A stretch of 63,107 bases of DNA, the filler included, from Salisapilia sapeloensis CBS 127946 (lineage: Eukaryota; Protista; Oomycota): the NCBI GenBank assembly GCA_023334545.1. It is 12 parts of 12 records of this genome, joined end to end, with 100 filler letters (N's around TTAATTAATTAA, not from the genome) between each part and the next. Parts side by side here need not be neighbours in the genome. Positions count along the whole stretch, not along the records: positions 61,002 to 63,107 come from JAADVB010000956.1; 11 more parts are not named here. One strand, 5' to 3'. The translations under genes and the position numbers were made by a program. Positions 61,002 to 63,107 of the stretch are shown here, in pieces (the first letter of the stretch is position 1; each line of letters begins with the position of its first letter). A model generated the notes under the pieces. That model saw only the letters and a program-made list of their open reading frames with translations, was not told the origin of the DNA and ran no database searches.

Positions 61002-62380
61002 CATGTTTGGAACGTTCGCTTCGACCTTGTCCAACTTATTGTTTCGCATATATCTATGTACAATCAAAATTACATCAAAAGCGATATCTATGCTCGTAGT
61101 CGAGAGATACGCACGCTCCCATCAAGTATGGCCAATCACCAACCCATTTTTCCAGTCTGCAGCTTTTTGCGTACCTATTTTATCGTCAGCATACAAGTTT
61201 TGGGCCATATAGAATTAAGTTTTATCACGCACAGGATCTCTAACGCAGGGAAAGTTTCCGCATGTAGTTTGTCAAGAAACTTTATGTCGTTTCCACTCAA
61301 GTCACTGCTCAAGACGGTCAGTCGCATATTTGAGGAGAAAAATCAAATTGATATGTACACTTCCTCTACTTGTGTGCAATTCTTCTCACGCAAACTGTCT
61401 TCCGTGAGCATATTGTCGGACAGGTATCTGCACTCCACATTTAGAACCTACGTGTACGTAAGAGGTTCACATAGTGTGCCTTACAGGTAACGTATTTCCG
61501 TCCCGATGCAATCAAAATCTTCGAGCTCGTTGGAAGAAAGGTTTCTAGACCATGTATAAAGTGTCAGATACATTGACGAGATACCCGTCTCCTTAGACCT
61601 TACAAATGAAAAACGTCGGGTATGCTCGCATCAAATTCGGCGATCCGATTGCGAGATAAATCCCTATATTCAGACAGATGAGAAACTTGGATCGAGAAAT
61701 GGCATTACTTGAAAGCTCACATATTTACGAGGCGTTCATATTTACCCGTAACACTTTCCAATTTGCCATCCTTGCTGTACCTAGTCTGCACATGTTAGAA
61801 AATGGATAGCCGACCAACATCGAAACGACAGTGGTGCCATGGATAATTACAGTTTGTATAGATTGGGAAAGTGACTTCCGTCCAGAGTCTTGAGCAATGT
61901 GTTTTCCATGTATCTATGAAGATCAAGTTTCAGTAACCATTCTTCTCGTCTTGGCGCATAACCACATAATACATACAAGAACTCAACGCTTTGAGACGTC
62001 CCGACTACCTCTTCGAGAGGAGTATTGTTAATTGTTCTGCATGCACACAGTAAGTCGATCGTCAGTGACTGAGTATGTATCTCAAGCTGCTTTACAAAAT
62101 TTTAGCGTGCCGAAATTGGCTTGCGTTGAGCTTTGTGAAGCTGTTTCCGCTCAGGTCACTACACAGTCAGAAGGATGAGTAGTGTGTCTTGCTGCAAACC
62201 TTATTGAGTCACCCACATTTCTTCCATGTCGTATGGAATGTTTATATCCGCGAGTTCTTCAGTAGTAAGGCTAGCTCCACGAAAAGGCTTATACGGCGGA
62301 TCGACATCCTCGGCATATATGCCTGCCAATGTCCAAACGAATAAAAAGCTATATACGAAATCTCGACGTGTCATCTTCAT
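61002..62380 (-). CDS. Secreted or receptor-type leucine-rich-repeat protein, one LRR per exon; exons 62380..62217, 62158..62096, 62036..61977, 61913..61851, 61780..61721, 61663..61604, 61544..61485, 61427..61359, 61304..61233, 61174..61115, 61053..61002 (continues into gap)
   Basis: Absent from the ORF track; built by hand. Signal peptide MKMTRRDFVYSFLFVWTLAGIYA. LRR units include DLSGNSFTKL, DLSRNRIAEF, NLSSNELEDF, YLSDNMLTE, DLSGNDIKFL and YMRNNKLDKV. Ten GT-AG introns of 54-70 nt, all phase 2, give one open frame. Confidence 0.9.
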
Positions 62381-62989
62381 GCAGAATGAAACAACACAGT
62401 GGTTGTTGATGAGAAAGATTGGAAATGCGAAAGACTATGCTTAGAGAATCTATCTTTCAACGCAGAACGAGACATCAAAGGGAACATGAGATTTCGAAGG
62501 GTATGATACACTGGTGTTCTGACTATGACCAAGCTACAACCAATCTACGAACTTCATATTGGACCATCGGTAGTGTTGTATAGTTTGCATCGTAAGTCTC
62601 ACAGGTTCATGAAAAATGTTAGGGGAAGCCAAAAGTTAGAGCTACAAAATCGAATTGACCGCAAAAGTCGAATTTAAGAAGGTTTAAAACTGATGAGAGC
62701 ACAGGTGTATTTATTCATGGTCATTCTGTACTTCTACATCTATAAAGCTGTGTTCTTTGCGTAGATCATCGGGTATAATGCAAGGCACAATAGGCGATGT
62801 GAACAAACATGGATGAATTGTAATCGAAATCAATGTCTATATGTTTGGTGGTTCGGTCTACTCTTACGTCATTGTCCACTTTACATTAATATACACTTAT
62901 GTCGTCCGTTCCTCTGTCATGTCTTGGCGAGGAATCCTGTCGAGCGTATCCTCAGAAGCCTCCAGGTTGAAGTTGTATTCGATTTACTT

Positions 62990-63107
62990 GCAACATTGAG
63001 CTATTCGCCATTTCAATGGGACGGTGTACAGCGCAAGTCGCAAATATCGACCAATTATTTCGTTCACCATTGTACTGTGTCTGCTCCGAAATAAAAGCGA
63101 AGAGCTA
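62990..63107 (+). repeat. Another copy of the dispersed decayed element (matches the reverse complement of about 33865..33980)
   Basis: gagctattcgcc..tgggacgg..tacagcgca.gtcg..aat.tcg..caattatt....gtactgtgtctgctccgaaataa vs gagctcttcgct..tgggatggatacagtgcacgtcgaaaatgtcgctcaattatt...gtactgtgtctgttccgaaataa. Both read NY..H.TVS.PK*. Confidence 0.72.

Follow-up and report, generated by a model that had tools for sequence, protein, structure and literature searches.

A probable spliced gene for a secreted or surface leucine-rich repeat protein with one repeat per exon in Salisapilia sapeloensis

Genes with one leucine-rich repeat per exon

Brown algae, plants and vertebrates are already known to possess genes in which each exon encodes one leucine-rich repeat (LRR). 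In brown algae, the type I LRR exons of the ROCO genes have a length of 72 nt and are in phase 2, and shuffling of exons as well as alternative splicing were reported for them (PMC3341825; PMC11378527). In the ROCO loci, relic LRR exons occur within long introns and also on the strand opposite to the gene, and recombined paralogues as well as recombined near-identical exons are seen (PMC3341825). The type II LRR exons of Ectocarpus encode the motif xLxxNxLxxxxxGxxxxxxxLxxL and were identified in seven LRR-kinases and in a further eight loci (Zambounis et al., 2012, PMC3341825). These type II loci revealed no sign of shuffling (PMC3341825). In vertebrates, the LRR exons of the rat LH receptor were interpreted as duplications of a prototype exon encoding a single LRR, and gonadotrophin-receptor introns are without exception in phase 2 (PMC11378527). 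For human NLRs a strict exon-per-repeat modularity with the same boundary in each repeat was described, and this was regarded as precondition for exon-skipping isoforms (Hoss et al., 2019, PMC6642158).

If the organism studied here belongs to the oomycetes, the LRR receptor kinases of this group are the closest genes described so far (PMC3268121). About 25 of these are encoded per Phytophthora or Saprolegnia genome (PMC3268121; PMC8254037). The described enzymes contain 1–6 LRRs with a mean of 3, a count that was obtained by domain predictors and that may be too low (PMC8254037). Introns and exons are mentioned in neither of the two reports (PMC3268121; PMC8254037).

The locus described here is located at positions 61002–63107 of the window, i.e., of the whole stretch of analyzed DNA with a length of 63,107 nt, filler included, to which all positions refer. 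The piece has a G+C content of 42% and contains no N. As judged from its sequence, it probably carries a genuine spliced gene whose product is an LRR protein that is secreted or exposed at the surface. The gene would be an ordinary nuclear one on the minus strand, of which the piece holds the 5′ part.

Gene structure and encoded protein

A scripted rebuild of the gene model starting from the ATG at position 62380 on the minus strand resulted in 11 exons with GT-AG boundaries, which together form a frame of 261 codons (783 nt) without a stop codon. The ATG is the first one in frame following an in-frame stop codon located 18 codons upstream. Within the region 62381–62400 a TCATTCT motif is found 5 nt upstream of the ATG on the minus strand; it resembles the oomycete initiator element (YCATTYY).

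Exon 1 (62217–62380, 164 nt) encodes a basic n-region, a hydrophobic core of 15–16 residues and about 30 further residues, and it ends in phase 2. Each of the following exons encodes one repeat, as seen from the rebuilt model together with a repeat matrix: exon 2 (62096–62158, 63 nt) encodes LRR 1, exon 3 (61977–62036, 60 nt) LRR 2, exon 4 (61851–61913, 63 nt) LRR 3, exon 5 (61721–61780, 60 nt) LRR 4 with the most degenerate motif of all, exon 6 (61604–61663, 60 nt) LRR 5, exon 7 (61485–61544, 60 nt) LRR 6, exon 8 (61359–61427, 69 nt) LRR 7, exon 9 (61233–61304, 72 nt) LRR 8 and exon 10 (61115–61174, 60 nt) the degenerate LRR 9. The script thereby reproduced all nine lengths that the first-pass annotation had given for exons 2–10. 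Of exon 11 (61002–61053), encoding LRR 10, only the first 52 nt are present as the end of the contig at 61002 cuts the gene within this exon; the C-terminus is lost, as had been stated before.

The ten introns, distributed over the span 61054–62216 on the minus strand, have lengths of 58, 59, 63, 70, 57, 59, 57, 54, 58 and 61 nt from intron 1 to intron 10. All ten carry GT..AG termini, all ten are in phase 2, and each of them splits the codon for the fourth conserved leucine (L4) of the motif LxxLxLxxNxL, in agreement with the earlier description of phase 2 introns of 54–70 nt interrupting the same hydrophobic codon. Donors are GTRNGT-like, acceptors are YAG, and CTRAY branch points are found. 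Short introns with such donors, YAG acceptors and acceptor-near CTRAY motifs fit oomycetes, and they also fit fungi and other protists. If intron 10 is left unspliced, the frame stops 14 codons further on. Intron 3 (61914–61976, 63 nt) is stop-free in frame and its retention would add 21 residues between LRR 2 and LRR 3; a stop-free stretch of 84 aa (62101–61850) covers it. It is unique in combining a length that is a multiple of three with the absence of a stop codon, as introns 5, 7 and 8, which are also multiples of three, each contain an in-frame stop.

Translation of the frame results in a signal-peptide-like N-terminus followed by an LRR array, so that this part of the first-pass annotation could be rebuilt as well. 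Residues 1–7 are basic and the hydropathy peak at residues 8–22 is the sole strongly hydrophobic stretch in the 261 aa; hydropathy revealed no transmembrane-like segment after residue 30. This N-terminus fits a signal peptide or a signal anchor, a call made from hydropathy alone. From residue 55 onward ten consecutive repeats of 20–24 residues follow, one per exon, with the column pattern L / x / L,I,M / S / x / N,T / x / L,I,F / x / x / hydrophobic, and all ten show the properties that define LRRs, i.e., tandem repeats of 20–30 residues with LxxLxLxxN/CxL. The repeats are highly divergent, as claimed before; a mean identity of 23% was obtained for their first 12 residues. The 261 aa also include three cysteines and four NxS/T sequons. 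An extracellular LRR domain would be the natural reading of such a frame.

Upon splicing as modelled, the product would enter the secretory pathway by means of its N-terminal signal peptide or signal anchor and its short LRRs (20–24 residues), at least ten in number and with four N-glycosylation sequons, may build a solenoid outside the cell. It could be secreted as an LRR protein, or it could be an ectodomain that belongs to a receptor-like protein or to a receptor kinase, depending on the C-terminus, which is located past the end of the contig at 61002. The one-repeat-per-exon layout is most readily interpreted as the trace of an old tandem duplication of a unit of ~120 nt composed of exon and intron, the copies of which would since have diverged until no similarity was left at the DNA level. 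Both the origin by duplication and the extracellular location we infer from the layout and from the predicted protein.

As all nine complete internal exons are symmetric with phase 2 on both sides, any one of them could be omitted without loss of the frame. The number of 512 theoretical skip patterns that had been derived from this is arithmetically correct. It holds for any run of symmetric exons, though, and nothing found here shows a use of these patterns. Most likely, the exons are spliced constitutively; constitutive receptor genes with such an architecture are documented elsewhere (PMC3341825; PMC11378527).

Gene prediction based on the length of open reading frames (ORFs) would perform poorly at this locus. 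The longest minus-strand ORF within the gene has 59 aa and consists of exon 1 and read-through, so that no ORF of 60 aa or more exists on the gene strand, as had been noted. The longest ORF of the piece is instead a plus-strand ORF of 144 aa (61056–61490), which is antisense to exons 8–11, and an ORF-based caller would report this one in place of the real gene. The view that ORF-based annotation misses the gene thus holds for a track of ORFs of 60 aa. It should not extend to spliced eukaryotic gene finders, which should be capable of modelling the gene because all of its splice signals are canonical. If the gene model is right, LRR receptors may be undercounted when fragmentary protist assemblies are surveyed, since annotation by ORF length misses genes of this kind.

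Tests against chance and searches for relatives

An exon chain of this type could be an artefact of choosing GT and AG dinucleotides around stop codons. In a permissive search with exons and introns of 45–90 nt in any phase, stop-free chains of 10–12 exons arose in most dinucleotide shuffles and a chain of 11 exons was found on the real plus strand, so that a stop-free chain by itself proves nothing. However, if exons are demanded to be multiples of three with one constant phase, the real minus strand contains a chain of nine exons and the real plus strand a chain of two, while chains of 2–3 exons were the commonest and a chain of seven was the longest among 200 shuffles. Adding a loose LRR motif to this symmetric chain resulted in five exons for the real sequence versus a maximum of two in the 200 shuffles. 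Furthermore, if each exon peptide was scored with a leave-one-out matrix built from the other nine repeats, it outranked in ten of ten cases all 2,395 other windows of 12 residues from the six-frame translation of the piece.

The extended splice signals point in the same direction. The donor position +3 is a purine in ten of ten introns (p = 0.002), the donor position +5 is a G in seven of ten (p = 0.005) and the acceptor position −3 is a pyrimidine in ten of ten (p = 2e-5). A CTRAY motif is located 8–25 nt before the 3′ end in six of ten introns compared with an expectation of 7% (p = 2e-5). The positions +3, +5 and −3 and the CTRAY motif played no part in the original choice of sites, and they fit real spliceosomal introns. 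Chance does not account for the symmetric chain or the repeat motif, nor for the extended splice consensus or the CTRAY branch points; an origin of the pattern by chance, to which we assign a negligible probability, is refuted for practical purposes. The spliced gene model is very probably correct as drawn, and from these signals we infer transcription of the gene and splicing in the modelled form. A search for sequencing runs listed three DNA runs and no RNA run.

Relatives were sought with exon 1, with the single exons and with a single-repeat profile. A phmmer search with exon 1 (54 aa) against 1.84 billion representative proteins revealed no credible relative; the five matches that were obtained (E 2e-5 to 5e-4) were rejected as spurious, being all internal stretches of unrelated repeat proteins. 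A scan of metagenome contigs with exon 1 also revealed no relative. The Atlas look-alikes of exon 1 comprised only N-terminal fragments of the signal-peptide type with scores of at most 0.85 and represent a weak lead. In an exact look-up in the contig collection neither the 59-aa ORF of exon 1 nor the antisense ORF of 144 aa was present, and the contigs of two other organisms of the same study contained nothing that is at least 80% alike.

With the single-repeat profile, all seven matched chains in the PDB were LRR proteins, although the matches were weak (E 0.045 to 0.52). In Pfam, one of the nine single exons (20–24 aa) matched LRR_4 at E = 0.15 and the other eight matched nothing; single exons are too short to reach significance in Pfam, and this near silence was expected. 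Pfam also showed no match for five other ORFs or stop-free stretches, among them the plus-strand ORFs of 144 aa and 93 aa. The latter (62813–63094) overlaps the high-copy repeat described below. A gene on the plus strand is unsupported.

Contig ends, copy number and exon diversification

The region upstream of the gene on the minus strand (62381–62899) is of single-contig depth and contains no recognizable gene or RNA. The only match to Rfam is a snoRNA match at chance level (20.6 bits versus a gathering score of 80). Positions 62900–63107, outside of the gene, constitute the end of a high-copy dispersed repeat as judged from contig depth: here, the summed depth of the contigs rises from ~101 up to 5,588, short contigs are numerous and variant letters amount to dozens. 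Long contigs, 19.9 and 44.9 kb in length, also carry copies of the repeat, which explains the break of the contig on this side.

Among the Logan contigs of the run that is the probable source, one of 1,933 nt with a depth of 101 carries the gene and ends exactly at 61002. The assembly graph forks at 61002–61031, where two further contigs overlap the last 30 nt and extend past them, one of 10,413 nt (depth 40) and one of 654 nt (depth 83); this fork explains the assembly break at 61002. The depth of the gene contig is 2.5–3 times that of the neighboring long contigs (33–40); depths of 33 and 40 were obtained for further long contigs containing the repeat at 62900–63107. The fork depths suggest that the first ten repeats are shared by at least two versions, which differ further downstream. 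About three genome equivalents appear to have these repeats in common, with a split of ~1:2 inside or just after exon 11. The fork could be caused by polyploid haplotypes, a recent duplicate, a transposon insertion or differing downstream LRR exons.

Truncation, the adjoining repeat and the 2.5–3-fold depth together imply that the gene could be one of several copies, not all of which need to be intact. It might even be a pseudogene or a truncated duplicate, in which case a fragment of an LRR gene, present in several copies, was carried along with repeats and no longer produces protein. The bounding of the contig by a high-copy repeat on one side and by a graph fork on the other, the increased depth and the lack of relatives of exon 1 among the 1.84 billion representative proteins would all agree with this. 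However, 261 codons are still open across 11 exons, and 20 of 20 splice sites are canonical and accompanied by the extended consensus and by branch points, whereas in a decaying copy some of these signals would be expected to be lost. We therefore regard a pseudogene as unlikely and favor an ordinary gene, most likely spliced constitutively, that encodes a secreted or surface LRR protein.

The first-pass annotation had gone further and proposed a diversifying recognition system, in which diversity would be generated by combinatorial exon skipping and/or by ongoing shuffling between copies or alleles. In favor of it, each of the nine complete internal exons is symmetric and could be removed in frame, related architectures are shuffled or alternatively spliced in brown-algal ROCO genes (PMC3341825; PMC11378527) and in human NLRs (PMC6642158), and the graph forks inside exon 11 with continuations of depth 40 and 83 compared with 101 for the shared part. 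No backing for the proposal was found, however. Among the exons there is no DNA repeat apart from a single match of 19 nt with 84% identity between exon 11 and the start of exon 4, and neither TRF nor a repeat finder detected a periodic DNA repeat of ~120 nt. As the exons lack similarity at the DNA level, no recent duplication or exchange took place inside the visible array. The introns with their 54–70 nt leave no room for spare exons, and a search with the repeat matrix on both strands revealed no relic or spare LRR exon in introns, in the upstream region or on the opposite strand. Across 61002–62900 no variant letters were seen in the contigs of the source run. In addition, the exons end at the same position as the type II exons of Ectocarpus, in which shuffling was not found, and the fork may equally well go back to haplotype divergence, polyploidy or a transposon insertion. 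A system generating diversity in this way is thus quite improbable.

A more specific form of this proposal would be a hitherto undescribed family of surface or secreted LRR proteins, the copies or alleles of which have a common 5′ block and differing downstream LRR exons, and in which symmetric micro-exons are skipped or exchanged to vary the binding surface. The fork depths and the lack of relatives of exon 1 are compatible with such a family and do not require it, and we consider its existence improbable. If it were true, the ROCO exon-shuffling receptors would have a counterpart in stramenopiles other than brown algae. The locus would gain importance only if transcripts or population data showed a combinatorial use of exons.

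Comparison with known systems

The gene, which probably encodes a secreted or surface LRR protein and is most likely spliced constitutively, resembles several of the described systems and differs from each of them. With the type II exons of Ectocarpus, as published, it shares the coding of one LRR per exon, the exon boundary after L4 of LxxLxLxxNxL and the absence of shuffled or relic exons. In contrast to the type II repeats, which have 24 residues encoded by 72 nt, seven of the nine complete LRR exons have 60–63 nt and the repeats vary between 20 and 24 residues; just one of the nine complete exons (72 nt) has the length that characterizes type II. Moreover, the glycine in the middle of the type II repeat is not conserved here.

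The type I exons of the brown-algal ROCO genes are similar with regard to one LRR per exon, phase 2 introns throughout and exons that can be removed in frame. They differ in the offset of the boundary, as type I exons end after NxLx, and the relic or inverted exons and the recombined near-identical exons of the ROCO loci are absent here. ROCO proteins are cytosolic GTPases with ROC-COR domains located behind the LRRs, whereas the protein predicted here has a signal-peptide-like start, which argues against it being a cytosolic ROCO protein.

The vertebrate glycoprotein-hormone receptors (LH, FSH and TSH receptors) are comparable with regard to the prototype exon for one LRR proposed for the rat LH receptor, the phase 2 introns of the gonadotrophin receptors and an extracellular ectodomain, the latter being putative for the protein analyzed here. 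In these receptors the LRR ectodomain continues into a domain with seven transmembrane helices. They belong to a different lineage, and the likeness described here is one of architecture. Human NLRs likewise possess one repeat per exon with a constant position of the boundary; in contrast to the repeats found here, theirs are of RI-type with 28–29 residues, they are part of cytosolic proteins, and alternative splicing was shown experimentally.

With the oomycete LRR receptor kinases, whose LRR ectodomain is followed by a TM helix and a Ser/Thr kinase domain, the predicted protein has in common the putative extracellular LRR domain and the motif LxxLxLxxNxI/L. It differs by its at least ten LRRs compared with 1–6, a number that is maybe undercounted, in the kinases. 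If the gene model is right, the locus represents a clean example of exon-per-repeat coding of LRRs in a genome with very short introns, and its repeats, with 20–21 residues, would be unusually short and arranged in an array of at least ten as compared with the 1–6 of the oomycete LRR receptor kinases.
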